Assembly (NCBI GenBank): GCA_950097015.1
Contig: CATNEN010000039.1
Span: forward strand, 14,694,001 to 14,758,000
DNA length: 64,000 nucleotides
Source of the DNA: Macrostomum hystrix
Lineage: Eukaryota; Animalia; Platyhelminthes
Reading direction: 5' to 3'
Shown here in pieces: positions 27,953-49,530 of the stretch (the stretch's first letter is position 1; each line of letters begins with the position of its first letter). A program made the translations under genes and the position numbers. The notes below the pieces were generated by a model. The model saw only the letters and a program-made list of their open reading frames with translations. It made no database searches and had not been told where the DNA came from.

Positions 27953-28205
27953 CTAGTGTGACAGTCTCACAATCCAGTGTGACAATCTCACCATCTAGTG
28001 TGACAGTCTCACCATCTAGTATGACAGTCTCACCATCTAGTGTGACAATCTCACCATCTAGTGTGACAGTCTCACCATCTAGTATGACAGTCTCACCATC
28101 TAGTATGACAGTCTCACCATCTAGTATGACAGTCTCACCATCTAGTATGACAGTCTCACCATCTAGTATGACAGTCTCACCATCTAGTGTGACAATCTCA
28201 CAGTC
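27953..28205. repeat. 21-bp minisatellite (TCTAGTATGACAGTCTCACCA)n
   Basis: About 12 tandem copies. Confidence 0.95.
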
Positions 28206-28398: not shown

Positions 28399-28475
28399 TC
28401 AGCGCAGCGCAGTCAGTAACAGTGCCTGCAGCTTGCTCATCTTTGGAGTTGATTTCTGAGTTTAGTGATTGATTG
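28399..28475 (-). pseudogene. Truncated duplicate of exon 1 and 5' UTR of the giant Ly6-repeat gene
   Basis: ATGAGCAAGCTGCAGGCACTGTTACTGACTGCGCT (MSKLQALLLTALR-stop) and its upstream sequence match 48634-48705. Confidence 0.8.
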
Positions 28476-28988: not shown

Positions 28989-31900
28989 CTAAGCTTCAGC
29001 TGAGCTTCGCCACACAGTGGTCACTGCGGCCACCGCGGCGAATACGGCGATTTTTGCGGCGGCAGTAAGGCCCAGGGTGGACGCCGCTTTGTTTGCAGCG
29101 TAGAAGACTGCGATGTTGTTGGAGGCCGACGCGGTGTTGGAGGCCACAGTGCTGTTGGTGGCCGTGGTGCTGTTGGAGGCCGCGTTGGTGTTGGACGCCA
29201 CGTTGGTGTTGAAAGCCGCGATGGTGTTGGAGGCCGCGGTGGTGTTCGAGGCCGTGGTGTTGCTGAAGGCCGCGTTGTTACTGGAGGCCGCGGTGGTTCC
29301 GGAGGGTGGGTTGCACCTGTCCCAACTACAGATGGAGCACTTGTCGATATTTCTGAACCGATGAACGCAATAAAATTTTGATGCACACTTGCCTTGGGTC
29401 TGCAATGTTGGAGAGATAGACAGGAGTCGAAATTCAACCATTCAGTGTTAATTAGTAAACGGCACAGCCTAATAAAAGCAGCAGCTTACCACGTGACATC
29501 CATTTTGGTAGTAAGTGATAGAAAGGCATCCCATGCCTTCTGCAGGGCAATCCTTTTCTACAATTATTGTTGGCACTGCTTTAAACAGTTTTGAAATTGA
29601 ATAATGGTAGCAACGAAGGCGGCTCCCATTAAATGAGGACTCGATGCTGAGGTTCAACCATTCATTTTCGGGGGGCACAATGTTCTTGGAGGCAACGGTG
29701 GTGTTGGAGGCCACGATGGTGTTGGGGGCCGTAGTTGTGTCGGAGGCCGCGATGGTATTGGAGGCCGCGATCGTGCTTAAGGCCGCGTTCGTGTTGGAGA
29801 CCACGATGGTGTTGGGGTCCGTAGTTGTGTCGGAGGCCGTCCTGGTGTTGGTGGCCGCCATTGTGTTAGAGGCTGTGGTGGTGTCAGAGACCGCATTGGT
29901 GATGGAGGCCGCGATGGTGTTGGGGGCCGTAGTTGTGGAGGAGGCATTCATGGTGTTGGTGGCTGACATTGTGTTAGAGGCCTCGATGGTGTTGGATGCC
30001 GTAATGGTGTTGGAGGCCGTGGTGGTGTCGGAGGCCGCGATGGTATTGGAGGCCGCGATCGTGCTTAAGACCGCGTTCGTGTTGGAGACCACGATGGTGT
30101 TGGGGTCCGTAGTTGTGTCGGAGGCCGTCCTGGTGTTGGTGGCCGCCATTGTGTTAGAGGCTGTGGTGGTGTCAGAGACCGCATTGGTGATGGAGGCCGC
30201 GATGGTGTTGGGGGCCGTAGTTGTGGAGGAGGCATTCATGGTGTTGGTGGCTGACATTGTGTTAGAGGCCTCGATGGTGTTGGATGCCGTAATGGTGTTG
30301 GAGGCCGTGGTTGTGTCGGAGGCCGTCATGGTGTTGGTGGCCGACATTGTGTTAGAGGCCTCGTTGGTGTTGGATGCCGACGTAATGGTGTCGGAGGCCG
30401 TGGTGGTGTCGGAGGCCGCGATGGTATTGGAGTCTGCGATGGTGTTCGAAGCCACGTATGTGTTCGAGGCGACGATGGTGTTGGATGCCGTATTGGTGTC
30501 GGTGGCCACGATGGTATTGGAGGCCGCGATGGTGTTCGAGGCCGCGTTAGTGTTAGAGGCGACGATGGTGTTGGAGGCCGTGGTGGTGTCGGAGGCCGTC
30601 ATGGTGTGGGTGGCCGAAATTGTTTTAGAGGCCTCGATGGTGTTGGATGCCGTAATGGTGTTGGAGGCCGTGGTGGTGTCGGAGGCCGTCATGGTGTTGG
30701 TGGCCGCCATTGTGTTAGAGGCCTCGATGGTGTTGGATGCCGTAATGGTGTTGGAGGCCGAGGTGGTGTCGGAGGCCGCGATGGTATTGGAGTCTACGAT
30801 GGTGTTCGAGGCCGCGTATGTGCTAGAGGCGACGATGGTGATGGAGGCCGTGGTGGTGTCGGAGACCGCGTTGGTGTTGGAGGCCGCGGTGGTGTTCGAG
30901 GACCCGTTTGTGTTAGTTGCTGCGAGGGTGTTAGTGGACGCAATTGTGTTTGAGGCCTCGACGGTGATGGAGGCCGTGGTGGTGTCGGTGGCCGCGTTGG
31001 TGTTGGAGGCCTTGTTAGTGTTGGAGGCCCAGTTTGTTCCGGAGGGTGGGTTGCACCTGTCCCAACTACAGATGGAGCAGTTGTCGATATTTCTGAACCG
31101 CTCAACGCAATGAAATTTCGATGCACACATGCCTTGGGTCTGCAATGTTGGAGAGATAGACAGGAGTCGAAATTCAACCATTCAGTGTTAATTAGTAAAC
31201 GGCACAGCCTAATGAAAGCAGCAGCTTACCACGTGAGATCCATTTTGGTAGTAAGTGATAGAAAGGCATCCCATGCCTTCTGCAGGGCAATCCTTTTCTA
31301 CAATTATCTCTGGCACTGCTTTAAACAGTTTTGAAATTAAATAATGGTAGCAACGAAGGCGGCTCCCATTAAATGAGGACGCGATGCTGAGGTTGAGCCA
31401 TTTATTTTCGGAGGGCACAATGTTCTTGGAGGCAACGGTGGTGTTGGAGGACGCTATCGTGCTTGAGGCCGCGATGGTGTTGGAGGCAACGATGGTGTTG
31501 GAGGCCGTGGTGGTGTCGGAGGCCGTCATGGTGTTGGTGGCCGACATTGTGTTAGAGGCCTCGATGGTGTTGGATGCCGTGATGGTGTTGGAGGCTGCGG
31601 TGGTGTCGGAGGCCGTGATGGTATTGGACTCCGCGATGGTGTTTGAGGCCGCGTTTGTGTTAGAGGCGACGATGGTGTTGAAGGCCGTGGTGGTGTCGGA
31701 GGCCGCGTTAGTTTTGGAGGCCGCGATGGTGTTGGATGCCGTAATGGTGTTGGAGGCTGCGGTGGTGTCGGAGGCCGTGATGGTATTGGACTCCGCGATG
31801 GTGTTTGAGGCCGCGTTTGTGTTAGAGGCGACGATGGTGTTGAAGGCCGTGGTGGTGTCGGAGGCCGCGTTGGTGTTGGAGGCCGCGGTGGTGTTCGAGG

Positions 31901-34900
31901 ACCCGTTTGTGTTAGTTGCTGCGAGGGTGTTAGTGGACGCAATTGTGTTTGAGGCCTCGACGGTGATGGAGGCCGTGGTGGTGTCGGTGGCCGCGTTGGT
32001 GTTGGAGGCCTTGTTAGTGTTGGAGGCCCAGTTTGTTCCGGAGGGTGGGTTGCACCTGTCCCAACTACAGATGGAGCAGTTGTCGATATTTCTGAACCGC
32101 TCAACGCAATGAAATTTCGATGCACACATGCCTTGGGTCTGCAATGTTGGAGAGATAGACAGGAGTCGAAATTCAACCATTCAATGTTAATTAGTAAACG
32201 GCACAGCCTAATGAAAGCAGCAGCTTACCACGTGAGATCCATTTTGGTAGTAAGTGATAGAAAGGCATCCCATGCCTTCTGCAGGGCAATCCTTTTCTAC
32301 AATTATCTCTGGCACTGCTTTAAACAGTTTTGAAATTAAATAATGGTAGCAACGAAGGCGGCTCCCATTAAATGAGGACGCGATGCTGAGGTTGAGCCAT
32401 TTATTTTCGGAGGGCACAATGTTCTTGGAGGCAACGGTGGTGTTGGAGGCCGCTATCGTGCTTGAGGCCGCGATGGTGTTGGAGGCAACGATGGTGTTGG
32501 AGGCCGTGGTGGTGTCGGAGGCCGTCATGGTGTTGGTGGCCGACATTGTGTTAGAGGCCTCGATGGTGTTGGATGCCGTGATGGTGTTGGAGGCTGCGGT
32601 GGTGTCGGAGGCCGTGATGGTATTGGACTCCGCGATGGTGTTTGAGGCCGCGTTTGTGTTAGAGGCGACGATGGTGTTGAAGGCCGTGGTGGTGTCGGAG
32701 GCCGCGTTAGTTTTGGAGGCCGCGATGGTGTTGGATGCCGTAATGGTGTTGGAGGCTGCGGTGGTGTCGGAGGCCGTGATGGTATTGGACTCCGCGATGT
32801 TGTTTGAGGCCGCGTTTGTGTTAGAGGCGACGATGGTGTTGAAGGCCGTGGTGGTGTCGGAGGCCGCGTTAGTTTTGGAGGCCGCGATGGTGTTGGGGGC
32901 CGTAGTTGCGTCAGAGGCCGTCATGGTTTTGGAGGCCTCGATGGTGTTGGATGCCGTAATGGTGCTAGAGGCTTCGATGGTGTTGGATGCCGTAATGGTG
33001 TTGGAGGCAGTGGTGGTGTCAGAGGCCGTGATGGTATTGGAGGCCGCGATCGTGCTTAAGGCCGCGTTAGTGTTGGACGCCAAGATGGTGTTGGGGGCCG
33101 TAGTTTTGTCGGAGGCCGTGATGGTATTGGACTCCGCGATGGTGTTTGAGGCCGCGTTTGTGTTAGAGGCGACGATGGTGTTGAAGGCCGTGGTGGTGTC
33201 GGAGGCCGCGTTGGTGTTGGAGGCCGCGGTGGTGTTCGAGGACCCGTTTGTGTTAGTTGCTGCGAGGGTGTTAGTGGACGCAATTGTGTTTGAGGCCTCG
33301 ACGGTGATGGAGGCCGTGGTGGTGTCGGTGGCCGCGTTGGTGTTGGAGGCCTTGTTAGTGTTGGAGGCCCAGTTTGTTCCGGAGGGTGGGTTGCACCTGT
33401 CCCAACTACAGATGGAGCAGTTGTCGATATTTCTGAACCGCTCAACGCAATGAAATTTCGATGCACACATGCCTTGGGTCTGCAATGTTGGAGAGATAGA
33501 CAGGAGTCGAAATTCAACCATTCAGTGTTAATTAGTAAACGGCACAGCCTAATGAAAGCAGCAGCTTACCACGTGAGATCCATTTTGGTAGTAAGTGATA
33601 GAAAGGCATCCCATGCCTTCTGCAGGGCAATCCTTTTCTACAATTATCTCTGGCACTGCTTTAAACAGTTTTGAAATTAAATAATGGTAGCAACGAAGGC
33701 GGCTCCCATTAAATGAGGACGCGATGCTGAGGTTGAGCCATTTATTTTCGGAGGGCACAATGTTCTTGGAGGCAACGGTGGTGTTGGAGGCCGCTATCGT
33801 GCTTGAGGCCGCGATGGTGTTGGAGGCAACGATGGTGTTGGAGGCCGTGGTGGTGTCGGAGGCCGTCATGGTGTTGGTGGCCGACATTGTGTTAGAGGTC
33901 TCGATGGTGTTGGATGCCGTGATGGTGTTGGAGGCTGCGGTGGTGTCGGAGGCCGTGATGGTATTGGACTCCGCGATGGTGTTTGAGGCCGCGTTTGTGT
34001 TAGAGGCGACGATGGTGTTGAAGGCCGTGGTGGTGTCGGAGGCCGCGTTAGTTTTGGAGGCCGCGATGGTGTTGGATGCCGTAATGGTGTTGGAGGCTGC
34101 GGTGGTGTCGGAGGCCGTGATGGTATTGGACTCCGCGATGGTGTTTGAGGCCGCGTTTGTGTTAGAGGCGACGATGGTGTTGAAGGCCGTGGTGGTGTCG
34201 GAGGCCGCGTTAGTTTTGGAGGCCGCGATGGTGTTGGGGGCCGTAGTTGTGTCAGAGGCCGTCATGGTTTTTGAGGCCTCGATGGTGTTGGATGCCGTAA
34301 TGGTGCTAGAGGCTTCGATGGTGTTGGATGCCGTAATGGTGTTGGAGGCAGAGGTGGTGTCAGAGGCCGTGATGGTATTGGAGGCCGCGATCGTGCTTAA
34401 GGCCGCGTTAGTGTTGGACGCCAAGATGGTGTTGGGGGCCGTAGTTTTGTCGGAGGCCGTGATGGTATTGGACTCCGCGATGGTGTTTGAGGCCGCGTTT
34501 GTGTTAGAGGCGACGATGGTGTTGAAGGCCGTGGTGGTGTCGGAGGCCGCGTTAGTTTTGGAGGCCGCGATGGTGTTGGATGCCGTAATGGTGTTGGAGG
34601 CTGCCGTGGTGTCGGAGGCCGTGATGGTATTGTACTCCGCGATGGTGTTTGAGGCCGCGTTTGTGTTAGAGGCGACGATGGTGTTGAAGGCCGTGGTGGT
34701 GTCGGAGGCCGCGTTAGTTTTGGAGGCCGCGATGATGTTGGGGGCCGTAGTTGTGTCAGAGGCCGTCATGGTTTTGGAGGCCTCGATGGTGTTGGATGCC
34801 GTAATGGTGCTAGAGGCTTCGATGGTGTTGGATGCCGTAATGGTGTTGGAGGCAGTGGTGGTGTCAGAGGCCGTGATGGTATTGGAGGCCGCGATCGTGC

Positions 34901-37900
34901 TTAAGGCCGCGTTAGTGTTGGACGCCAAGATGGTGTTGGGGGCCGTAGTTTTGTCAGAGGCCGTGATGGTATTGGACTCCGCGATGGTGTTTGAGGCCGC
35001 GTTTGTGTTAGAGGCGACGATGGTGTTGAAGGCCGTGGTGGTGTCGGAGGCCGCGTTGGTGTTGGAGGCCGCGGTGGTGTTCGAGGACTCGTTTGTGTTA
35101 GTTGCTGCGAGGGTGTTAGTGGACGCAATTGTGTTTGAGGCCTCGACGGTGATGGAGGCCGTGGTGGTGTCGGTGGCCGCGTTGGTGTTGGAGGCCTTGT
35201 TAGTGTTGGAGGCCCAGTTTGTTCCGGAGGGTGGGTTGCACCTGTCCCAACTACAGATGGAGCAGTTGTCGATATTTCTGAACCGCTCAACGCAATGAAA
35301 TTTCGATGCACACATGCCTTGGGTCTGCAATGTTGGAGAGATAGACAGGAGTCGAAATTCAACCATTCAGTGTTAATTAGTAAACGGCACAGCCTAATGA
35401 AAGCAGCAGCTTACCACGTGAGATCCATTTTGGTAGTAAGTGATAGAAAGGCATCCCATGCCTTCTGCAGGGCAATCCTTTTCTACAATTATCTCTGGCA
35501 CTGCTTTAAACAGTTTTGAAATTAAATAATGGTAGCAACGAAGGCGGCTCCCATTAAATGAGGACGCGATGCTGAGGTTGAGCCATTTATTTTCGGAGGG
35601 CACAATGTTCTTGGAGGCAACGGTGGTGTTGGAGGCCGCTATCGTGCTTGAGGCCGCGATGGTGTTGGAGGCAACGATGGTGTTGGAGGCCGTGGTGGTG
35701 TCGGAGGCCGTCATGGTGTTGGTGGCCGACATTGTGTTAGAGGTCTCGATGGTGTTGGATGCCGTGATGGTGTTGGAGGCTGCGGTGGTGTCGGAGGCCG
35801 TGATGGTATTGGACTCCGCGATGGTGTTTGAGGCCGCGTTTGTGTTAGAGGCGACGATGGTGTTGAAGGCCGTGGTGGTGTCGGAGGCCGCGTTAGTTTT
35901 GGAGGCCGCGATGGTGTTGGATGCCGTAATGGTGTTGGAGGCTGCGGTGGTGTCGGAGGCCGTGATGGTATTGGACTCCGCGATGGTGTTTGAGGCCGCG
36001 TTTGTGTTAGAGGCGACGATGGTGTTGAAGGCCGTGGTGGTGTCGGAGGCCGCGTTAGTTTTGGAGGCCGCGATGGTGTTGGATGCCGTAATGGTGTTGG
36101 AGGCTGCCGTGGTGTCGGAGGCCGTGATGGTATTGTACTCCGCGATGGTGTTTGAGGCCGCGTTTGTGTTAGAGGCGACGATGGTGTTGAAGGCCGTGGT
36201 GGTGTCGGAGGCCGCGTTAGTTTTGGAGGCCGCGATGATGTTGGGGGCCGTAGTTGTGTCAGAGGCCGTCATGGTTTTGGAGGCCTCGATGGTGTTGGAT
36301 GCCGTAATGGTGCTAGAGGCTTCGATGGTGTTGGATGCCGTAATGGTGTTGGAGGCAGTGGTGGTGTCAGAGGCCGTGATGGTATTGGAGGCCGCGATCG
36401 TGCTTAAGGCCGCGTTAGTGTTGGACGCCAAGATGGTGTTGGGGGCCGTAGTTTTGTCAGAGGCCGTGATGGTATTGGACTCCGCGATGGTGTTTGAGGC
36501 CGCGTTTGTGTTAGAGGCGACGATGGTGTTGAAGGCCGTGGTGGTGTCGGAGGCCGCGTTGGTGTTGGAGGCCGCGGTGGTGTTCGAGGACCCGTTTGTG
36601 TTAGTTGCTGCGAGGGTGTTAGTGGACGCAATTGTGTTTGAGGCCTCGACGGTGATGGAGGCCGTGGTGGTGTCGGTGGCCGCGTTGGTGTTGGAGGCCT
36701 TGTTAGTGTTGGAGGCCCAGTTTGTTCCGGAGGGTGGGTTGCACCTGTCCCAACTACAGATGGAGCAGTTGTCGATATTTCTGAACCGCTCAACGCAATG
36801 AAATTTCGATGCACACATGCCTTGGGTCTGCAATGTTGGAGAGATAGACAGGAGTCGAAATTCAACCATTCAGTGTTAATTAGTAAACGGCACAGCCTAA
36901 TGAAAGCAGCAGCTTACCACGTGAGATCCATTTTGGTAGTAAGTGATAGAAAGGCATCCCATGCCTTCTGCAGGGCAATCCTTTTCTACAATTATCTCTG
37001 GCACTGCTTTAAACAGTTTTGAAATTAAATAATGGTAGCAACGAAGGCGGCTCCCATTAAATGAGGACGCGATGCTGAGGTTGAGCCATTTATTTTCGGA
37101 GGGCACAATGTTCTTGGAGGCAACGGTGGTGTTGGAGGCCGCTATCGTGCTTGAGGCCGCGATGGTGTTGGAGGCAACGATGGTGTTGGAGGCCGTGGTG
37201 GTGTCGGAGGCCGTCATGGTGTTGGTGGCCGACATTGTGTTAGAGGCCTCGATGGTGTTGGATGCCGTGATGGTGTTGGAGGCTGCGGTGGTGTCGGAGG
37301 CCGTGATGGTATTGGACTCCGCGATGGTGTTTGAGGCCGCGTTTGTGTTAGAGGCGACGATGGTGTTGAAGGCCGTGGTGGTGTCGGAGGCCGCGTTAGT
37401 TTTGGAGGCCGCGATGGTGTTGGATGCCGTAATGGTGTTGGAGGCTGCGGTGGTGTCGGAGGCCGTGATGGTATTGGACTCCGCGATGGTGTTTGAGGCC
37501 GCGTTTGTGTTAGAGGCGACGATGGTGTTGAAGGCCGTGGTGGTGTCGGAGGCCGCGTTAGTTTTGGAGGCCGCGATGGTGTTGGGGGCCGTAGTTGTGT
37601 CAGAGGCCGTCATGGTTTTTGCGGCCTCGATGGTGTTGGATGCCGTAATGGTGCTAGAGGCTTCGATGGTGTTGGATGCCGTAATGGTGTTGGAGGCTGC
37701 CGTGGTGTCGGAGGCCGTGATGGTATTGTACTCCGCGATGGTGTTTGAGGCCGCGTTTGTGTTAGAGGCGACGATGGTGTTGAAGGCCGTGGTGGTGTCG
37801 GAGGCCGCGTTAGTTTTGGAGGCCGCGATGATGTTGGGGGCCGTAGTTGTGTCAGAGGCCGTCATGGTTTTGGAGGCCTCGATGGTGTTGGATGCCGTAA

Positions 37901-40900
37901 TGGTGCTAGAGGCTTCGATGGTGTTGGATGCCGTAATGGTGTTGGAGGCAGTGGTGGTGTCAGAGGCCGTGATGGTATTGGAGGCCGCGATCGTGCTTAA
38001 GGCCGCGTTAGTGTTGGACGCCAAGATGGTGTTGGGGGCCGTAGTTTTGTCAGAGGCCGTGATGGTATTGGACTCCGCGATGGTGTTTGAGGCCGCGTTT
38101 GTGTTAGAGGCGACGATGGTGTTGAAGGCCGTGGTGGTGTCGGAGGCCGCGTTGGTGTTGGAGGCCGCGGTGGTGTTCGAGGACCCGTTTGTGTTAGTTG
38201 CTGCGAGGGTGTTAGTGGACGCAATTGTGTTTGAGGCCTCGACGGTGATGGAGGCCGTGGTGGTGTCGGTGGCCGCGTTGGTGTTGGAGGCCTTGTTAGT
38301 GTTGGAGGCCCAGTTTGTTCCGGAGGGTGGGTTGCACCTGTCCCAACTACAGATGGAGCAGTTGTCGATATTTCTGAACCGCTCAACGCAATGAAATTTC
38401 GATGCACACATGCCTTGGGTCTGCAATGTTGGAGAGATAGACAGGAGTCGAAATTCAACCATTCAGTGTTAATTAGTAAACGGCACAGCCTAATGAAAGC
38501 AGCAGCTTACCACGTGAGATCCATTTTGGTAGTAAGTGATAGAAAGGCATCCCATGCCTTCTGCAGGGCAATCCTTTTCTACAATTATCTCTGGCACTGC
38601 TTTAAACAGTTTTGAAATTAAATAATGGTAGCAACGAAGGCGGCTCCCATTAAATGAGGACGCGATGCTGAGGTTGAGCCATTTATTTTCGGAGGGCACA
38701 ATGTTCTTGGAGGCAACGGTGGTGTTGGAGGCCGCTATCGTGCTTGAGGCCGCGATGGTGTTGGAGGCAACGATGGTGTTGGAGGCCGTGGTGGTGTCGG
38801 AGGCCGTCATGGTGTTGGTGGCCGACATTGTGTTAGAGGCCTCGATGGTGTTGGATGCCGTGATGGTGTTGGAGGCTGCGGTGGTGTCGGAGGCCGTGAT
38901 GGTATTGGACTCCGCGATGGTGTTTGAGGCCGCGTTTGTGTTAGAGGCGACGATGGTGTTGAAGGCCGTGGTGGTGTCGGAGGCCGCGTTAGTTTTGGAG
39001 GCCGCGATGGTGTTGGATGCCGTAATGGTGTTGGAGGCTGCGGTGGTGTCGGAGGCCGTGATGGTATTGGACTCCGCGATGGTGTTTGAGGCCGCGTTTG
39101 TGTTAGAGGCGACGATGGTGTTGAAGGCCGTGGTGGTGTCGGAGGCCGCGTTAGTTTTGGAGGCCGCGATGGTGTTGGATGCCGTAATGGTGTTGGAGGC
39201 TGCCGTGGTGTCGGAGGCCGTGATGGTATTGTACTCCGCGATGGTGTTTGAGGCCGCGTTTGTGTTAGAGGCGACGATGGTGTTGAAGGCCGTGGTGGTG
39301 TCGGAGGCCGCGTTAGTTTTGGAGGCCGCGATGATGTTGGGGGCCGTAGTTGTGTCAGAGGCCGTCATGGTTTTGGAGGCCTCGATGGTGTTGGATGCCG
39401 TAATGGTGCTAGAGGCTTCGATGGTGTTGGATGCCGTAATGGTGTTGGAGGCAGTGGTGGTGTCAGAGGCCGTGATGGTATTGGAGGCCGCGATCGTGCT
39501 TAAGGCCGCGTTAGTGTTGGACGCCAAGATGGTGTTGGGGGCCGTAGTTTTGTCAGAGGCCGTGATGGTATTGGACTCCGCGATGGTGTTTGAGGCCGCG
39601 TTTGTGTTAGAGGCGACGATGGTGTTGAAGGCCGTGGTGGTGTCGGAGGCCGCGTTGGTGTTGGAGGCCGCGGTGGTGTTCGAGGACTCGTTTGTGTTAG
39701 TTGCTGCGAGGGTGTTAGTGGACGCAATTGTGTTTGAGGCCTCGACGGTGATGGAGGCCGTGGTGGTGTCGGTGGCCGCGTTGGTGTTGGAGGCCTTGTT
39801 AGTGTTGGAGGCCCAGTTTGTTCCGGAGGGTGGGTTGCACCTGTCCCAACTACAGATGGAGCAGTTGTCGATATTTCTGAACCGCTCAACGCAATGAAAT
39901 TTCGATGCACACATGCCTTGGGTCTGCAATGTTGGAGAGATAGACAGGAGTCGAAATTCAACCATTCAGTGTTAATTAGTAAACGGCACAGCCTAATGAA
40001 AGCAGCAGCTTACCACGTGAGATCCATTTTGGTAGTAAGTGATAGAAAGGCATCCCATGCCTTCTGCAGGGCAATCCTTTTCTACAATTATCTCTGGCAC
40101 TGCTTTAAACAGTTTTGAAATTAAATAATGGTAGCAACGAAGGCGGCTCCCATTAAATGAGGACGCGATGCTGAGGTTGAGCCATTTATTTTCGGAGGGC
40201 ACAATGTTCTTGGAGGCAACGGTGGTGTTGGAGGCCGCTATCGTGCTTGAGGCCGCGATGGTGTTGGAGGCAACGATGGTGTTGGAGGCCGTGGTGGTGT
40301 CGGAGGCCGTCATGGTGTTGGTGGCCGACATTGTGTTAGAGGTCTCGATGGTGTTGGATGCCGTGATGGTGTTGGAGGCTGCGGTGGTGTCGGAGGCCGT
40401 GATGGTATTGGACTCCGCGATGGTGTTTGAGGCCGCGTTTGTGTTAGAGGCGACGATGGTGTTGAAGGCCGTGGTGGTGTCGGAGGCCGCGTTAGTTTTG
40501 GAGGCCGCGATGGTGTTGGATGCCGTAATGGTGTTGGAGGCTGCGGTGGTGTCGGAGGCCGTGATGGTATTGGACTCCGCGATGGTGTTTGAGGCCGCGT
40601 TTGTGTTAGAGGCGACGATGGTGTTGAAGGCCGTGGTGGTGTCGGAGGCCGCGTTAGTTTTGGAGGCCGCGATGGTGTTGGATGCCGTAATGGTGTTGGA
40701 GGCTGCCGTGGTGTCGGAGGCCGTGATGGTATTGTACTCCGCGATGGTGTTTGAGGCCGCGTTTGTGTTAGAGGCGACGATGGTGTTGAAGGCCGTGGTG
40801 GTGTCGGAGGCCGCGTTAGTTTTGGAGGCCGCGATGATGTTGGGGGCCGTAGTTGTGTCAGAGGCCGTCATGGTTTTGGAGGCCTCGATGGTGTTGGATG

Positions 40901-43900
40901 CCGTAATGGTGCTAGAGGCTTCGATGGTGTTGGATGCCGTAATGGTGTTGGAGGCAGTGGTGGTGTCAGAGGCCGTGATGGTATTGGAGGCCGCGATCGT
41001 GCTTAAGGCCGCGTTAGTGTTGGACGCCAAGATGGTGTTGGGGGCCGTAGTTTTGTCAGAGGCCGTGATGGTATTGGACTCCGCGATGGTGTTTGAGGCC
41101 GCGTTTGTGTTAGAGGCGACGATGGTGTTGAAGGCCGTGGTGGTGTCGGAGGCCGCGTTGGTGTTGGAGGCCGCGGTGGTGTTCGAGGACCCGTTTGTGT
41201 TAGTTGCTGCGAGGGTGTTAGTGGACGCAATTGTGTTTGAGGCCTCGACGGTGATGGAGGCCGTGGTGGTGTCGGTGGCCGCGTTGGTGTTGGAGGCCTT
41301 GTTAGTGTTGGAGGCCCAGTTTGTTCCGGAGGGTGGGTTGCACCTGTCCCAACTACAGATGGAGCAGTTGTCGATATTTCTGAACCGCTCAACGCAATGA
41401 AATTTCGATGCACACATGCCTTGGGTCTGCAATGTTGGAGAGATAGACAGCAGTCGAAATTCAACCATTCAGTGTTAATTAGTAAACGGCACAGCCTAAT
41501 GAAAGCAGCAGCTTACCACGTGAGATCCATTTTGGTAGTAAGTGATAGAAAGGCATCCCATGCCTTCTGCAGGGCAATCCTTTTCTACAATTATCTCTGG
41601 CACTGCTTTAAACAGTTTTGAAATTAAATAATGGTAGCAACGAAGGCGGCTCCCATTAAATGAGGACGCGATGCTGAGGTTGAGCCATTTATTTTCGGAG
41701 GGCACAATGTTCTTGGAGGCAACGGTGGTGTTGGAGGCCGCTATCGTGCTTGAGGCCGCGATGGTGTTGGAGGCAACGATGGTGTTGGAGGCCGTGGTGG
41801 TGTCGGAGGCCGTCATGGTGTTGGTGGCCGACATTGTGTTAGAGGCCTCGATGGTGTTGGATGCCGTGATGGTGTTGGAGGCTGCGGTGGTGTCGGAGGC
41901 CGTGATGGTATTGGACTCCGCGATGGTGTTTGAGGCCGCGTTTGTGTTAGAGGCGACGATGGTGTTGAAGGCCGTGGTGGTGTCGGAGGCCGCGTTAGTT
42001 TTGGAGGCCGCGATGGTGTTGGATGCCGTAATGGTGTTGGAGGCTGCGGTGGTGTCGGAGGCCGTGATGGTATTGGACTCCGCGATGGTGTTTGAGGCCG
42101 CGTTTGTGTTAGAGGCGACGATGGTGTTGAAGGCCGTGGTGGTGTCGGAGGCCGCGTTAGTTTTGGAGGCCGCGATGGTGTTGGGGGCCGTAGTTGTGTC
42201 AGAGGCCGTCATGGTTTTTGCGGCCTCGATGGTGTTGGATGCCGTAATGGTGCTAGAGGCTTCGATGGTGTTGGATGCCGTAATGGTGTTGGAGGCTGCC
42301 GTGGTGTCGGAGGCCGTGATGGTATTGTACTCCGCGATGGTGTTTGAGGCCGCGTTTGTGTTAGAGGCGACGATGGTGTTGAAGGCCGTGGTGGTGTCGG
42401 AGGCCGCGTTAGTTTTGGAGGCCGCGATGATGTTGGGGGCCGTAGTTGTGTCAGAGGCCGTCATGGTTTTGGAGGCCTCGATGGCGTTGGATGCCGTAAT
42501 GGTGCTAGAGGCTTCGATGGTGTTGGATGCCGTAATGGTGTTGGAGGCAGTGGTGGTGTCAGAGGCCGTGATGGTATTGGAGGCCGCGATCGTGCTTAAG
42601 GCCGCGTTAGTGTTGGACGCCAAGATGGTGTTGGGGGCCGTAGTTTTGTCAGAGGCCGTGATGGTATTGGACTCCGCGATGGTGTTTGAGGCCGCGTTTG
42701 TGTTAGAGGCGACGATGGTGTTGAAGGCCGTGGTGGTGTCGGAGGCCGCGTTGGCGTTGGAGGCCGCGGTGGTGTTCGAGGACCCGTTTGTGTTAGTTGC
42801 TGCGAGGGTGTTAGTGGACGCAATTGTGTTTGAGGCCTCGACGGTGATGGAGGCCGTGGTGGTGTCGGTGGCCGCGTTGGTGTTGGAGGCCTTGTTAGTG
42901 TTGGAGGCCCAGTTTGTTCCGGAGGGTGGGTTGCACCTGTCCCAACTACAGATGGAGCAGTTGTCGATATTTCTGAACCGCTCAACGCAATGAAATTTCG
43001 ATGCACACATGCCTTGGGTCTGCAATGTTGGAGAGATAGACAGGAGTCGAAATTCAACCATTCAGTGTTAATTAGTAAACGGCACAGCCTAATGAAAGCA
43101 GCAGCTTACCACGTGAGATCCATTTTGGTAGTAAGTGATAGAAAGGCATCCCATGCCTTCTGCAGGGCAATCCTTTTCTACAATTATCTCTGGCACTGCT
43201 TTAAACAGTTTTGAAATTAAATAATGGTAGCAACGAAGGCGGCTCCCATTAAATGAGGACGCGATGCTGAGGTTGAGCCATTTATTTTCGGAGGGCACAA
43301 TGTTCTTGGAGGCAACGGTGGTGTTGGAGGCCGCTATCGTGCTTGAGGCCGCGATGGTGTTGGAGGCAACGATGGTGTTGGAGGCCGTGGTGGTGTCGGA
43401 GGCCGTCATGGTGTTGGTGGCCGACATTGTGTTAGAGGTCTCGATGGTGTTGGATGCCGTGATGGTGTTGGAGGCTGCGGTGGTGTCGGAGGCCGTGATG
43501 GTATTGGACTCCGCGATGGTGTTTGAGGCCGCGTTTGTGTTAGAGGCGACGATGGTGTTGAAGGCCGTGGTGGTGTCGGAGGCCGCGTTAGTTTTGGAGG
43601 CCGCGATGGTGTTGGATGCCGTAATGGTGTTGGAGGCTGCGGTGGTGTCGGAGGCCGTGATGGTATTGGACTCCGCGATGGTGTTTGAGGCCGCGTTTGT
43701 GTTAGAGGCGACGATGGTGTTGAAGGCCGTGGTGGTGTCGGAGGCCGCGTTAGTTTTGGAGGCCGCGATGGTGTTGGATGCCGTAATGGTGTTGGAGGCT
43801 GCCGTGGTGTCGGAGGCCGTGATGGTATTGTACTCCGCGATGGTGTTTGAGGCCGCGTTTGTGTTAGAGGCGACGATGGTGTTGAAGGCCGTGGTGGTGT

Positions 43901-46900
43901 CGGAGGCCGCGTTAGTTTTGGAGGCCGCGATGATGTTGGGGGCCGTAGTTGTGTCAGAGGCCGTCATGGTTTTGGAGGCCTCGATGGTGTTGGATGCCGT
44001 AATGGTGCTAGAGGCTTCGATGGTGTTGGATGCCGTAATGGTGTTGGAGGCAGTGGTGGTGTCAGAGGCCGTGATGGTATTGGAGGCCGCGATCGTGCTT
44101 AAGGCCGCGTTAGTGTCGGACGCCAAGATGGTGTTGGGGGCCGTAGTTTTGTCAGAGGCCGTGATGGTATTGGACTCCGCGATGGTGTTTGAGGCCGCGT
44201 TTGTGTTAGAGGCGACGATGGTGTTGAAGGCCGTGGTGGTGTCGGAGGCCGCGTTGGTGTTGGAGGCCGCGGTGGTGTTCGAGGACCCGTTTGTGTTAGT
44301 TGCTGCGAGGGTGTTAGTGGACGCAATTGTGTTTGAGGCCTCGACGGTGATGGAGGCCGTGGTGGTGTCGGTGGCCGCGTTGGTGTTGGAGGCCTTGTTA
44401 GTGTTGGAGGCCCAGTTTGTTCCGGAGGGTGGGTTGCACCTGTCCCAACTACAGATGGAGCAGTTGTCGATATTTCTGAACCGCTCAACGCAATGAAATT
44501 TCGATGCACACATGCCTTGGGTCTGCAATGTTGGAGAGATAGACAGGAGTCGAAATTCAACCATTCAGTGTTAATTAGTAAACGGCACAGCCTAATGAAA
44601 GCAGCAGCTTACCACGTGAGATCCATTTTGGTAGTAAGTGATAGAAAGGCATCCCATGCCTTCTGCAGGGCAATCCTTTTCTACAATTATCTCTGGCACT
44701 GCTTTAAACAGTTTTGAAATTAAATAATGGTAGCAACGAAGGCGGCTCCCATTAAATGAGGACGCGATGCTGAGGTTGAGCCATTTATTTTCGGAGGGCA
44801 CAATGTTCTTGGAGGCAACGGTGGTGTTGGAGGCCGCTATCGTGCTTGAGGCCGCGATGGTGTTGGAGGCAACGATGGTGTTGGAGGCCGTGGTGGTGTC
44901 GGAGGCCGTCATGGTGTTGGTGGCCGACATTGTGTTAGAGGTCTCGATGGTGTTGGATGCCGTGATGGTGTTGGAGGCTGCGGTGGTGTCGGAGGCCGTG
45001 ATGGTATTGGACTCCGCGATGGTGTTTGAGGCCGCGTTTGTGTTAGAGGCGACGATGGTGTTGAAGGCCGTGGTGGTGTCGGAGGCCGCGTTAGTTTTGG
45101 AGGCCGCGATGGTGTTGGATGCCGTAATGGTGTTGGAGGCTGCGGTGGTGTCGGAGGCCGTGATGGTATTGGACTCCGCGATGGTGTTTGAGGCCGCGTT
45201 TGTGTTAGAGGCGACGATGGTGTTGAAGGCCGTGGTGGTGTCGGAGGCCGCGTTAGTTTTGGAGGCCGCGATGGTGTTGGGGGCCGTAGTTGTGTCAGAG
45301 GCCGTCATGGTTTTTGAGGCCTCGATGGTGTTGGATGCCGTAATGGTGCTAGAGGCTTCGATGGTGTTGGATGCCGTAATGGTGTTGGAGGCAGAGGTGG
45401 TGTCAGAGGCCGTGATGGTATTGGAGGCCGCGATCGTGCTTAAGGCCGCGTTAGTGTTGGACGCCAAAATGGTGTTGGGGGCCGTAGTTTTGTCGGAGGC
45501 CGTGATGGTATTGGACTCCGCGATGGTGTTTGAGGCCGCGTTTGTGTTAGAGGCGACGATGGTGTTGAAGGCCGTGGTGGTGTCGGAGGCCGCGTTAGTT
45601 TTGGAGGCCGCGATGGTGTTGGATGCCGTAATGGTGTTGGAGGCTGCGGTGGTGTCGGAGGCCGTGATGGTATTGTACTCCGCGATGGTGTTTGAGGCCG
45701 CGTTTGTGTTAGAGGCGACGATGGTGTTGAAGGCCGTGGTGGTGTCGGAGGCCGCGTTAGTTTTGGAGGCCGCGATGGTGTTGGATGCCGTAATGGTGTT
45801 GGAGGCTGCGGTGGTGTCGGAGGCCGTGATGGTATTGTACTCCGCGATGGTGTTTGAGGCCGCGTTTGTGTTAGAGGCGACGATGGTGTTGAAGGCCGTG
45901 GTGGTGTCGGAGGCCGCGTTAGTTTTGGAGGCCGCGATGGTGTTGGGGGCCGTAGTTGTGTCAGAGGCCGTCATGGTTTTGGAGGCCTCGATGGTGTTGG
46001 ATGCCGTAATGGTGCTAGAGGCTTCGATGGTGTTGGATGCCGTAATGGTGTTGGAGGCAGTGGTGGTGTCAGAGGCCGTGATGGTATTGGAGGCCGCGAT
46101 CGTGCTTAAGGCCGCGTTAGTGTTGGACGCCAAGATGGTGTTGGGGGCCGTAGTTTTGTCGGAGGCCGTGATGGTATTGGACTCCGCGATGGTGTTTGAG
46201 GCCGCGTTTGTGTTTGAGGCAACGATGGTGTTGAAGGCCGTGGTGGTGTCGGAGGCCGCGTTGGTGTTGGAGGCCGCGGTGGTGTTCGAGGACCCGTTTG
46301 TGTTAGTTGCTGCGAGGGTGTTAGTGGACGCAATTGTGTTTGAGGCCTCGACGGTGATGGAGGCCGTGGTGGTGTCGGTGGCCGCGTTGGTGTTGGAGGC
46401 CTTGTTAGTGTTGGAGGCCCAGTTTGTTCCGGAGGGTGGGTTGCACCTGTCCCAACTACAGATGGAGCAGTTGTCGATATTTCTGAACCGCTCAACGCAA
46501 TGAAATTTCGATGCACACATGCCTTGGGTCTGCAATGTTGGAGAGATAGACAGGAGTCGAAATTCAACCATTCAATGTTAATTAGTAAACGGCACAGCCT
46601 AATGAAAGCAGCAGCTTACCACGTGAGATCCATTTTGGTAGTAAGTGATAGAAAGGCATCCCATGCCTTCTGCAGGGCAATCCTTTTCTACAATTATCTC
46701 TGGCACTGCTTTAAACAGTTTTGAAATTAAATAATGGTAGCAACGAAGGCGGCTCCCATTAAATGAGGACGCGATGCTGAGGTTGAGCCATTTATTTTCG
46801 GAGGGCACAATGTTCTTGGAGGCAACGGTGGTGTTGGAGGCCGCTATCGTGCTTGAGGCCGCGATGGTGTTGGAGGCAACGATGGTGTTGGAGGCCGTGG

Positions 46901-48668
46901 TGGTGTCGGAGGCCGTCATGGTGTTGGTGGCCGACATTGTGTTAGAGGTCTCGATGGTGTTGGATGCCGTGATGGTGTTGGAGGCTGCGGTGGTGTCGGA
47001 GGCCGTGATGGTATTGGACTCCGCGATGGTGTTTGAGGCCGCGTTTGTGTTAGAGGCGACGATGGCGTTGAAGGCCGTGGTGGTGTCGGAGGCCGCGTTA
47101 GTTTTGGAGGCCGCGATGGTGTTGGATGCAGTAATGGTGTTGGAGGCTGCGGTGGTGTCGGAGGCCGTGATGGTATTGGACTCCGCGATGGTGTTTGAGG
47201 CTGCGTTTGTGTTAGAGGCGACGATGGTGTTGAAGGCCGTGGTGGTGTCGGAGGCCGCGTTAGTTTTGGAGGCCGCGATGGTGTTGGGGGCCGTAGTTCT
47301 GTCAGAGGCCGTCATGGTTTTGGAGGCCTCGATGGTGTTGGATGCCGTAATTGTGTTGGAGGCCGTGCTTGTGTCGGAGGCCGTCGTGGTGTTGTTGGCC
47401 GCCATTGTGTTAGAGGCCGTGGTGGTGTCGGAGGCCGCGTTGGTGTTAGAAGCGGCGATGGTATTGGGGGCCGTAGTTGTGTCGGAGGCCGTCATGGAGT
47501 TGGTGGCCGACATTGTGTTAAAGGCCTCGATGTTGTTGGATGCCGTAATGGTGTTGGAGGCCGCGGTGGTGTCGGTGGCCGCGATGGTGTTCGAGGCCGC
47601 GTTTGTGTTAGAGGCGACGATGGAGTTGGAGGTCGTGGTAGTGTTGGTGGACGTCATGGTGTTGGTGGCCGCCATTGTGTTAGAGGCCTCGATCTTGTAG
47701 GATGCCGTGATGGTGTTTAAGGCCGCTGTGCTGTTTGAAGCCGCGTTGGTGTTGGAGGCGACGGTGGTGTTTGAGGCCGTGGTAGTGTCGGAGATCGCAA
47801 TAGTGTTAGACGCCGTGGCGGTGTCGGAGGCCGCGATGGTATTTGAGGCCGCGGTGGTGATGGAGGCAGTGGTGGTGTTTGACGCCGTGGCGGTGTCGGA
47901 GGCCGTGATGGTATTTGAGGCCGCGTGGGTGTCGGAGGCCGCGATGGTATTTGAGGCCGCGATGGTGTTAGTGGCCGCAACTGTGTTTGAGGCCTCGACG
48001 GTGATGGAGGCCGTGGTGGTGTCCGAGGCCGCAATGGTGTCGGAGGCCGTCATGGTGTTGGTGGCCGCCATTGTGTTAGAGGCCTCGATCGTGTTGGATG
48101 CCGTGATGGTGTTGAAGGCCGCGGTACTGTTGGAGGCTGAGTTGGTATAGGAGGCCGCATTAGTGTTGGAGGCCGCGGTGTAGTTGGGCGGTATGTTGCA
48201 CAAATCCTTCGAACAGTCGGAGCAGTTAAATCCTTTCCATTTCCAAAAAGCGCATATTATAGGATATGAACATGCGCCAAAGGCCTTTAATATTTTAGAG
48301 AATGGCAGGAGTTGCAGTTCAACCTTTAATAGCTAATTAATAGCCATCGCGTATTTTTCAGAGTTAATAAAAGCAGGAGCTTACCATAAAAGGCTCTTTT
48401 CTTGTCACAATTTGGCATCCTATTTCGCATTTCATCGCAATGACATTAGTATTATTAAGGGAATCAAATTTGTAGCACTGTAAGCCGCTCACAATCTGAA
48501 ACTCTGAAAAAAAATTTATGTTCAATAGTCAAGCGTACAGAGTGTCCGAGAGGACTAGACCAACATGAAAAAGTTTTTGAATTCTATTTAAATAGATGCA
48601 AAGCTTAAGTACTCACTAGAGACGAGCAACACTAGCGCAGTCAGTAACAGTGCCTGCAGCTTGTTCAT
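28989..48668 (-). CDS. Giant secreted, probably GPI-anchored protein: signal peptide + 13 Ly6/uPAR-like (8-Cys three-finger) domains alternating with ASNTxx hexapeptide arrays; ~6,100 aa, 15 exons
   Basis: Exons 48668-48617 (MNKLQALLLTALVLLVS), 48503-48385, 48284-46620, 46529-44613, 44522-43110, 43019-41517, 41426-40014, 39923-38511, 38420-36918, 36827-35415, 35324-33570, 33479-32229, 32138-31230, 31139-29490, 29399-28989. Twelve 90-bp phase-0 introns (GTAAGC...polypyrimidine TTGCAG). Splicing joins LRCY...KDC...GC...HV to TQGMC...C...C..C..DRCN. Hydrophobic C-terminal tail AAAKIAVFAAVAAVTTVW. Confidence 0.85.
29300..46800. repeat. Coding macro-tandem array of ~1.0-2.0-kb units containing an 18-bp sub-repeat
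   Basis: Twelve near-identical Cys-domain/intron cores separated by variable numbers of 18-bp units such as GATGGTGTTGGAGGCCGC. Confidence 0.95.
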
Positions 48669-49530
48669 TGCTTCAGGAGTTGATTGCTGAATTTAGTGAT
48701 TGATTGCTGGGTTGATTTCTTAGTTTAGTTGTAAAAAAAAGTTTTGTCTTGTCCTTTCGCTGCTTCGAGCTAAATAGACGAATAAAGACCCTGTGCATGT
48801 ACCCGTTCACTGAGATGCCTTTAGTCTATGGCCAAAATCACTAGCTGTAGAGGGCCTAAAAGCGAAGATTTCGGCATGACGATACCGAGCTCTAAAGTTA
48901 TTCAACGTCTCTCACGTACTTTGCCATGCCACTTGACCATCGTTTCCCCAAACCCGTGTTGGCTTAGTTATCGTCTATGGTCCTTAGTCTGACGCACAGT
49001 TGCGACTTAGATGAAGGCACTTGTTGCGCGAATTTTGTTGTTTAACTTTCTGCTCGCAAGCTAGAGAGCTATCCACAAATATATGCTAGAGTTCTGATCC
49101 TCTACAGAGCGAAAAATCATTTCACTGGCTTTTATGCAATAGGATAACCTGTATAGGATAGCTTCGAAGAGGTGAACCTCTTCAGTACCGAGACTTTTTA
49201 CTGCACTCCGTGAAAATCCGTATGGTCAGCATGGCTGACCATAGACTATTTTATCCCTGGCGTGTGGTCTTGCTTCACTCCATGAAAATCCTAAGCGAAT
49301 TCTATGCAGTTCTTGCGCACCGGTTTTTTATTCCTTAGACGAATGGGTGGGTGGCTGTAACGCAAAGCGTCTATGTCCTAAACCCTCCAGCTCTATATAT
49401 GTACAGTAAGCTGTTGTTCTTCACTGCAATCTTTCTATCCTCCAATCTCACTGTGTTTGTGTAAAAAACTGTCAACTTGAGTGGTATGGACCAACTTATT
49501 ACCAGCGACGAATCGTTTTGCGATGAATCT

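Follow-up and report, generated by a model that had tools for sequence, protein, structure and literature searches.

A Macrostomum hystrix gene for a predicted surface protein with 13 LU-like modules on hexapeptide spacers

We analyzed a 64,000-nucleotide stretch of the genome of the flatworm Macrostomum hystrix (GenBank assembly GCA_950097015.1, contig CATNEN010000039.1, positions 14,694,001 to 14,758,000 of the forward strand). This whole stretch is referred to as the window, and positions are given in its numbering. From 48668 to 28989, the minus strand carries a 15-exon gene whose product strings eight-cysteine modules resembling the Ly6/uPAR (LU) domain on long hexapeptide spacers. Taken as a whole, the data are best explained, with moderate probability in our judgement, by an expressed M. 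hystrix gene that is the largest of a family of LU-like stalked proteins with a glycosylphosphatidylinositol (GPI)-type tail, that grew by tandem amplification of one unit and that encodes a multivalent filament of the glycocalyx or coat. We infer the three-finger fold, glycosylation, GPI anchor, location and binding function of this product.

Gene model and exon-intron structure

Thirteen long open reading frames (ORFs) lie on the minus strand between 48668 and 28989, each starting within a short stop-containing stretch and ending a few codons past ...YYQNGSHV. The stretches that break these ORFs are canonical introns, with GTAAGC directly after ...CAC GTG and TTGCAG directly before ACC CAA GGC. 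Exons were joined in a script that checked frame, length and composition, yielding 6,128 codons in a stop-free frame from the ATG at 48668 to the stop codon at 28989-28991. The initial annotation, made from the sequence alone, had proposed a single spliced frame of ~6,100 residues, and the 15-exon model bears this out.

The domains contain 13 GTAAGC donors. The in-domain introns are all in phase 0; one is 100 bp long and twelve are 90 bp (GTAAGC...TTGCAG), these twelve differing among themselves at 0-1 positions. Intron 1 (48504-48616, 113 bp) is in phase 1 and lies within the signal peptide. Exons 1 and 2 measure 52 and 119 nt, and the remaining thirteen (411-1917 nt) follow with phase-0 junctions throughout. 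Internal exons are without exception phase 0-0, opening with the C-terminal half (C-half) of a domain and closing with the N-terminal half (N-half) of a domain. The features of the gene, all on the minus strand, are as follows.

Exon 1, 48617..48668, minus strand: ATG and most of the signal peptide (MNKLQALLLTALVLLVS); phase-1 end at a GTGAGT donor
Exon 2, 48385..48503, minus strand: end of the signal peptide (..KFQIVSG) and N-half of the divergent domain 1 (LQCYKF...KCEIGC...PFM)
Exon 3, 46620..48284, minus strand: 1665 nt; domain 1 C-half (AFGAC...CSKDLCN), first hexapeptide spacer and domain 2 N-half; 83-89% identity to core units
Exon 4, 44613..46529, minus strand: 1917 nt; domain 2 C-half, spacer, domain 3 N-half
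Exon 5, 43110..44522, minus strand: 1413 nt; C-half, spacer and N-half unit
Exon 6, 41517..43019, minus strand: 1503 nt; C-half, spacer and N-half unit
Exon 7, 40014..41426, minus strand: 1413 nt; C-half, spacer and N-half unit; identical to exon 10
Exon 8, 38511..39923, minus strand: 1413 nt; C-half, spacer and N-half; start of the second 4,509-bp three-unit block
Exon 9, 36918..38420, minus strand: 1503 nt; C-half, spacer and N-half unit
Exon 10, 35415..36827, minus strand: 1413 nt; C-half, spacer and N-half unit
Exon 11, 33570..35324, minus strand: 1755 nt; C-half, spacer and N-half unit
Exon 12, 32229..33479, minus strand: 1251 nt; C-half, spacer and N-half unit
Exon 13, 31230..32138, minus strand: 909 nt; shortest unit, spacer of 229 aa
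Exon 14, 29490..31139, minus strand: 1650 nt; diverged edge unit ending in the domain 13 N-half with an extra Cys (NGCHV); 84-86% identity to core units
Exon 15, 28989..29399, minus strand: domain 13 C-half, short Ser/Thr/Asn/Ala stalk, hydrophobic C-terminal tail (..LGLTAAAKIAVFAAVAAVTTVWRSSAEA, ~28992-29075) and stop codon
100-bp in-domain intron of domain 1, 48285-48384, minus strand: counterpart of the 90-bp introns
90-bp in-domain introns 1-6, 46530-46619, 44523-44612, 43020-43109, 41427-41516, 39924-40013 and 38421-38510, minus strand: GTAAGC...TTGCAG, phase 0
90-bp in-domain introns 7-12, 36828-36917, 35325-35414, 33480-33569, 32139-32228, 31140-31229 and 29400-29489, minus strand: GTAAGC...TTGCAG, phase 0

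Plus-strand ORFs of 240-580 aa also run across the array. We rejected them as genes; they are mirror ORFs of the stop-free repeat, and the splice sites fit the minus strand only.

Architecture of the predicted protein

The joined frame opens with a hydrophobic signal, MNKLQALLLTALVLLVS-KFQIVSG, followed by LQCY. It closes with ~22 hydrophobic residues, for which the 15-residue Kyte-Doolittle mean reaches up to ~2.0, and then six polar residues, RSSAEA. Both the signal peptide at the 48668 end and the hydrophobic C-terminal tail had been called beforehand, and both were confirmed in the joined frame. In exon 15, the sole Pfam match was a sub-threshold one to the MGC-24 sialomucin family.

The count of 13 eight-Cys modules, each ~74 aa, held as well; the 105 Cys of the frame equal 13 x 8 plus one extra in the last domain. 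Twelve of the domains had been described as near-identical. Domains 2-12 are identical as protein, and domain 13 shares 93% of its N-half and 88% of its C-half with the core domain, from which it differs by six changes including the ninth Cys. Domain 1, which shares 14% (N-half) and 36% (C-half) with the core domain, is a separate, diverged type.

The spacers are built of the hexapeptide [I/N/T/M]-[A/T/V/E]-A-S-[N/D]-T. Residue autocorrelation was 0.46-0.56 at multiples of 6 as against 0.09 off register, in agreement with the hexapeptide rods proposed earlier; their length, first put at ~200-550 aa, was 229-568 aa. The spacers consist of T (25%), A (20%), S (16%), N (14%), I (8%) and P (1.4%), with Ser and Thr together amounting to 41%, and they contain 57 N-x-S/T sequons. 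The low Pro content is unlike the classic Pro/Thr/Ser (PTS) regions of mucins and speaks against a mucin-type reading of the spacers. A single-sequence AlphaFold2 model of exon 13 had a mean predicted local distance difference test (pLDDT) score of 33, with four low-confidence strands in the N-half; in the spacer, pLDDT was 26-34 and no secondary structure was predicted. The model lends no support to a hexapeptide beta-helix or beta-solenoid rod and may fit an extended glycan-bearing stalk, weak evidence either way. Exon 13 had been chosen as a possible circular permutant of the module (C-half, rod, N-half); the mean pLDDT of 33 made this model unusable for a fold search.

Transcription and splicing of the gene

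Contigs of four public sequencing runs (X1, X2, X5 and X9) were aligned to 44400-48800. Two contigs of run X1, at 46233-46974 and 48061-48708, read through the introns, as genomic DNA would. In run X2, which comes from the same species and the same study as X1, one contig skips 48283-48384 (100 bp) and 48503-48617 (113 bp) together, and a second carries the HV/TQG junction that the initial annotation had suggested looking for. Contigs of run X5 (same species, different study) skip 44522-44613 and 46529-46620 (90 bp), and a contig of run X9 (another species, ~93-95% identical) skips 46529-46620 with 200 letters on its shorter side; the splicing predicted across the 90-bp introns was thus found in X5 and X9. 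All skipped segments are CT..AC on the plus strand, i.e., GT..AG on the minus strand.

Genome-wide searches with the half-domains gave no match outside this locus and hence no retrocopy. Because no half-domain copy exists elsewhere in the genome, a processed DNA copy cannot explain the joined forms, indicating that they are transcripts. Among the 18 differences listed for X9, 13 are synonymous, and the 1 that falls in a domain is synonymous; these mostly synonymous differences indicate that the frame is under purifying selection in the second species. The gene is genuinely transcribed and spliced.

What tells against a full-length product is that no read spans the array, such that a single 18.4-kb mRNA and the exact count of 13 units rest on the gene model. 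The main products might instead be shorter isoforms generated by in-frame exon skipping, with the 13-domain form perhaps rare. Skipping any run of the phase 0-0 internal exons, with their identical half-domains, would keep the frame and leave intact domains, and the X2 junction contig fits several exon pairs equally ('goes back 1917'). The identical repeats fully explain this ambiguity, however, and no contig has a junction attributable to skipping alone; we consider that shorter isoforms are unlikely to predominate.

Loose contig ends were also seen at 48618 and 48668, where, in three runs, exon 1 is linked in transcript contigs to different 5' untranslated regions (5'UTRs) and to different second exons. 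These alternative joins fit expressed paralogs that share the signal exon.

Assignment of the module to the LU fold

The initial annotation assigned the repeated module to the three-finger fold of LU proteins. All 13 copies and all paralogs described below have eight Cys, CY after the start and an end of the form C-x2-C-x4/5-C-N. The module starts with L-x-C-Y and ends with C-x-x-D-x-C-N, and domain 1 begins right after the predicted signal cleavage site. By our own comparison, its Cys spacing can be mapped one-to-one onto that of eight-Cys three-finger proteins. In addition, exon 1 ends in phase 1, and each domain is split between Cys3 and Cys4. In LU genes, a phase-1 intron closes the signal exon, and each domain is then encoded by two exons separated by an intron in loop 2 (PMC6600238). 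The layout of the present gene matches this canonical layout, except that domains 2-13 have no introns on their outer sides.

In the ESM Atlas, the nearest named clusters for the 47-aa N-half were QVR, Toxin_TOLIP/UPAR_LY6, cobra toxin, PATE and ecTbetaR2, with scores of 0.75-0.82. All of these belong to the three-finger uPAR_Ly6_toxin clan, which we treat as a lead only. When the N-half and the C-half were co-folded as separate chains, the interaction prediction score from aligned errors (ipSAE) was 0.35 compared with 0.02 for the best control, a result rated as 'weak support'; the runs agreed in at least 96% of contacts, and the partner pLDDT was at least 72 (72-74). Of 78 solved complexes, 51 attain the mark used for co-folds, as do 2 of 108 mismatched pairs; at 0.60 or below, the mark takes in just 5 of the 78 solved complexes, yet all 4 mismatches that passed (of 180).

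Several results count against the assignment. In the module, C-x-x-C replaces the usual adjacent Cys-Cys before the last loop, and a further deviation from the LU framework is that no Cys stands at position +3 after the first Cys. Pfam searches with the half-domains (33-47 aa queries, E <= 10) gave no match to clan CL0117, a test handicapped by such short queries, and searches with six exon pieces gave sub-threshold chance matches alone (Cyt-b5, Neil1 and MGC-24). Six-frame genome scans with PF00021, PF17064 and PF00087 matched other, canonical LU genes and none at C39:14.72-14.74 Mb. Profile searches of the PDB with family alignments of the N- and C-halves returned chance matches only (ribosomal eS27 and uL16, E >= 0.36). 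When the half-domain alignments were compared by hhalign with eight canonical LU domains of the same genome, the terminal C..D.CN alone was aligned (E = 0.028, probability <2%). A 57-aa N-half had no relative among 1.84 billion representative proteins; both of its matches were translated junk repeats, and therefore the family is absent from that library. The C-half matched nothing in the ESM Atlas, and a homologous-protein search with residues 405-471 of exon 5, covering proteins of 259-824 aa only, was blank.

Such results could also arise if the module had a disulfide-rich fold specific to the lineage and had no more in common with LU domains than the LxCY and CN end motifs. This explanation would account for the missing significant matches in Pfam, the PDB and profile-profile comparison, for an N-half without relatives and a C-half without an Atlas match, and for C-x-x-C where LU domains have CC. 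On the other side, the Cys spacing fits eight-Cys three-finger proteins position by position (by our own comparison), the named Atlas neighbors of the N-half are all of the three-finger clan, and a signal peptide, domain, Ser/Thr stalk and GPI-type tail make up a typical Ly6 architecture. The gene layout, moreover, is that of LU genes (PMC6600238). We regard an unrelated disulfide-rich fold as improbable and the module as quite likely a very diverged, lineage-specific LU-like domain with a three-finger fold. The LU reading is plausible, with no sequence profile match reaching significance. The motif, Cys spacing, gene layout, Atlas neighbors and weak co-folding of the halves agree with the original Ly6/uPAR assignment, and Pfam, PDB and profile-profile comparison give no significant match.

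Evolution of the tandem array

At the DNA level, an 18-bp tandem period extends over 29686-48177 with a match of just 60%, indicating that the small repeat is old. Over the columns that they share, exons 4-13, the core units, show 99.1-100% identity, and in-frame blocks account for their differences in length; the edge units (exons 3 and 14) are 83-86% identical to the core units. Two three-unit blocks, 44522-40014 and 39923-35415, differ at 6 of 4,509 positions. The large units are young compared with the small repeat. A homogenised core with diverged edges is the pattern expected from unequal crossing-over and concerted evolution in a real tandem array.

We propose that a unit of 1.4-1.9 kb was amplified in tandem and may have been kept homogeneous by unequal crossing-over or gene conversion. 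The amplified unit would comprise the C-half of one domain, the stalk, the N-half of the domain that follows and the 90-bp intron, and splicing would restore 13 intact domains on one ~6,100-residue chain. The gene would then offer a clean case of concerted evolution with a duplicated unit whose ends do not coincide with the domain boundary, the domains being reconstituted by splicing.

For the M. hystrix assembly, canu was run on PacBio reads from a highly inbred line (F ~0.998), and the result was polished with Arrow and Pilon (PMC10468722). Assembly by canu and polishing by Arrow and Pilon can miscount or homogenise near-identical repeats, which weakens the case for the array as assembled; for a ~19-kb array of 99.9%-identical units, copy number and degree of identity therefore depend on the assembly. 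The gene may thus be real while the number and near-identity of its units stem in part from assembly and polishing; the actual locus would then have fewer or more units or vary between individuals like a mucin variable number tandem repeat. The very high identity of exons 4-13, the 6 differing sites between the two 4,509-bp blocks and the assembly procedure are in keeping with such an artifact, and the short contigs at the locus cannot bridge one unit. In contrast, unit lengths vary (909-1917 nt), a few differences are private to single units, the divergence of the edge units is what a real array would show, and the inbreeding of the sequenced line makes collapsed haplotypes unlikely. We judge an artifact of this kind to be somewhat unlikely, and favor a real, homogenised array.

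Length variants produced by exon skipping or unequal crossover are plausible. In a far-reaching version of this idea, to which we give little credence, the exon design itself is a length-and-valency generator; skipping or unequal crossover would give a perfect protein of another length and hence a tunable multivalent coat. That such a generator might serve surface recognition or defence in this worm, which inseminates through the skin, is speculative.

Family members in the genome

A segment of 131 bases (5'UTR, exon 1 and start of the intron) recurs at >=12 other loci with 84-91% identity, each locus having an intact MNKLQALLL.ALVLLVS exon and a GTGAGT donor. The paralogs follow one plan, in which an intron separates an N-half exon (..FQIVSG-L-x-C-Y..) from a C-half exon ending in C-x2-C-x4/5-C-N-x-P-P, and an A-S/T-N-T-x-x stalk, variable in length, leads to the same hydrophobic tail. 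In some of them, the protein ends right at this tail. The smaller paralogs L003, L001, L004 and L008+L011 share with the 13-domain gene the 5'UTR, signal exon and intron 1 (84-91% nucleotide identity), the split of the domain, the A-S/T-N-T stalk and the tail; their domains are 14-36% identical to the present ones at the amino-acid level. Three of these loci differ in domain number as follows.

L003: one domain, almost no stalk
L001: two domains
L008+L011, L008:527-4500 plus L011, G000:C38:8534500-8540600, plus strand: three identical LU-like domains, with A-T-N-T-I-A stalks of ~400, 500 and 680 aa

In L008+L011, introns still border each of the N-half exons, and the donor at the end of the rod, GTGAGTAC, resembles that of exon 1. 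What sets the 13-domain gene apart from the paralogs is its copy number, together with the lack of an intron between a stalk and the N-half that follows. This gene is the extreme and largest member of a lineage-specific family that has 1-3 domains elsewhere. Among the paralogs (L001, L004, L008 and window 48470-48625), nucleotide conservation of the 5'UTR, signal exon and intron 1 far exceeds amino-acid conservation of the domain exons; conserved non-coding sequence around fast-changing coding sequence is an odd pattern.

We considered whether the junction between the rod and the N-half is an exonised intron 1. This was unsupported; intron 1 is conserved among the paralogs and cannot be aligned to the internal junction. 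Among the paralogs, none with a stop-free in-domain intron was found.

Relation to known systems

Among candidate relatives, the multi-LU GPI proteins (uPAR, C4.4A and CD177) and the flatworm Ly6/CD59-like proteins come closest, all with one to a few domains; C4.4A also has a Ser/Thr/Pro-rich stalk. Vertebrate multi-LU GPI proteins (uPAR, C4.4A/LYPD3, CD177, TEX101 and Haldisin) resemble the present protein in having a signal peptide, tandem two-exon LU-type domains and a GPI-type tail (PMC6600238). They comprise two to few packed domains, with introns flanking each exon pair, whereas here 13 domains lie 229-568 aa apart, there is no intron between stalk and next domain, 11 copies are identical, and no sequence method places the module in the LU clan. 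Flatworm Ly6/CD59-like tegument proteins have one or two domains and are not known to carry long hexapeptide rods. The Schistosoma proteins SmLy6/SmCD59 and Sm29 and the Ly6 family of Fasciola come from the same phylum as the present case and are surface proteins with LU domains (PMC4492491, PMC3812095, PMC8763315). Unlike in these proteins, the module here is without detectable similarity to canonical LU profiles.

In the gel-forming mucins MUC2, MUC5AC and MUC5B, CysD domains interrupt the PTS region; these mucins are secreted, rich in Pro and polymerise through VWD/CK domains. They provide the closest analogy in design, not in ancestry, as small disulfide-rich domains stand at intervals in a long glycan-carrying repeat and the tandem units are recently homogenised. 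The present protein differs from them in having LU-like instead of CysD domains, none of their VWD/CK domains, 1.4% Pro and a tail of the membrane-anchor type. We class the predicted product as an extreme, mucin-like, multi-LU-type surface protein of a lineage-specific flatworm family; the interpretation given in the initial annotation is partly supported.

LU/three-finger domains are described as single modules or few adjacent copies, and a many-copy LU protein on long glycan-type rods is mentioned neither in the LU review nor in a survey of 387 invertebrate genomes (PMC6600238, PMC13719153). The claim that no comparable protein has been described agrees with these two sources, in which absence of mention falls short of proof. 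If the fold is confirmed, the protein would have the highest known LU valency and would represent an independent invention of the mucin design, in which Cys domains interrupt a glycosylated repeat.

Proposed product and role

The protein would enter the secretory pathway, the signal peptide being cut after ..IVSG to leave a mature start at LQCY. Each domain would fold with four disulfides, and the spacers, given their 41% Ser and Thr and their N-x-S/T sequons, are predicted to be heavily glycosylated and extended. A glycosylated extended chain measures ~0.2-0.25 nm per residue. The ~4,600 spacer residues would therefore reach about a micrometre, with a domain every 50-140 nm. The tail probably directs GPI attachment or, less likely, serves as a single-pass anchor. 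Tethered to the outer membrane leaflet, the product would form a micrometre-scale mucin-like filament with 11-12 identical binding modules at regular intervals, and thus a putative multivalent part of the glycocalyx or of a coat, whether secreted or on the surface. A glycocalyx, mucus or adhesive role suggested in the initial annotation may apply.

The protein might also be released instead of anchored, as a secreted mucus, adhesive, or egg or sperm coat whose tail is cleaved or whose GPI anchor is shed. Its huge, repetitive and glycan-prone build resembles that of secreted gel or glue proteins, and six polar residues (RSSAEA) follow the tail. However, the same tail is kept in the small one-domain paralogs and ends the protein outright in some of them, which is typical of a GPI signal. 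Release is thus doubtful in our view, if a reading to be reckoned with, and we favor a tethered filament. Macrostomum is an experimental model, and in-situ hybridisation and RNA interference are established for the genus in M. lignano. This tractability makes the function of the gene directly testable.

Neighboring sequences and other LU-type loci

A truncated relic of the 5'UTR/exon-1 cassette lies ~500 bp downstream of the stop codon:

Cassette relic, 28406..28475, minus strand: 90% identity over query positions 25-97

The relic probably lies outside the transcript of this gene and may derive from a neighboring gene of the family or from the duplication by which the locus arose. Further downstream of the gene, a 21-bp minisatellite of ~12 copies with a 94% match occupies 27953-28201. 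Short-period repeats resembling it are also found downstream of the paralogs L001 and L005, suggesting that the 3' flanks may have duplicated along with the genes.

Elsewhere in the genome, canonical QVR/Ly6-type LU domains pass the Pfam cut-off (L012-L018; e.g., G000:C1:17114220-17114507, C38:13672818-13673129 and C12:3312966-3313322). Several of these genes are intronless, and others are split near profile position 41-47. At L010:556-1329 on the minus strand (G000:C7), a different tandem repeat, PSQSVGL[CF], comes after a classic 10-Cys LU domain (..CCRGDLCN), and on the opposite strand an open frame runs through a GQQTGMG repeat. At L003 ~1940-2940 on the plus strand, immediately downstream of this one-domain paralog, there are two adjacent ORFs, which by eye look like the DNA-binding and DDE catalytic parts of a Tc1/mariner-type transposase.

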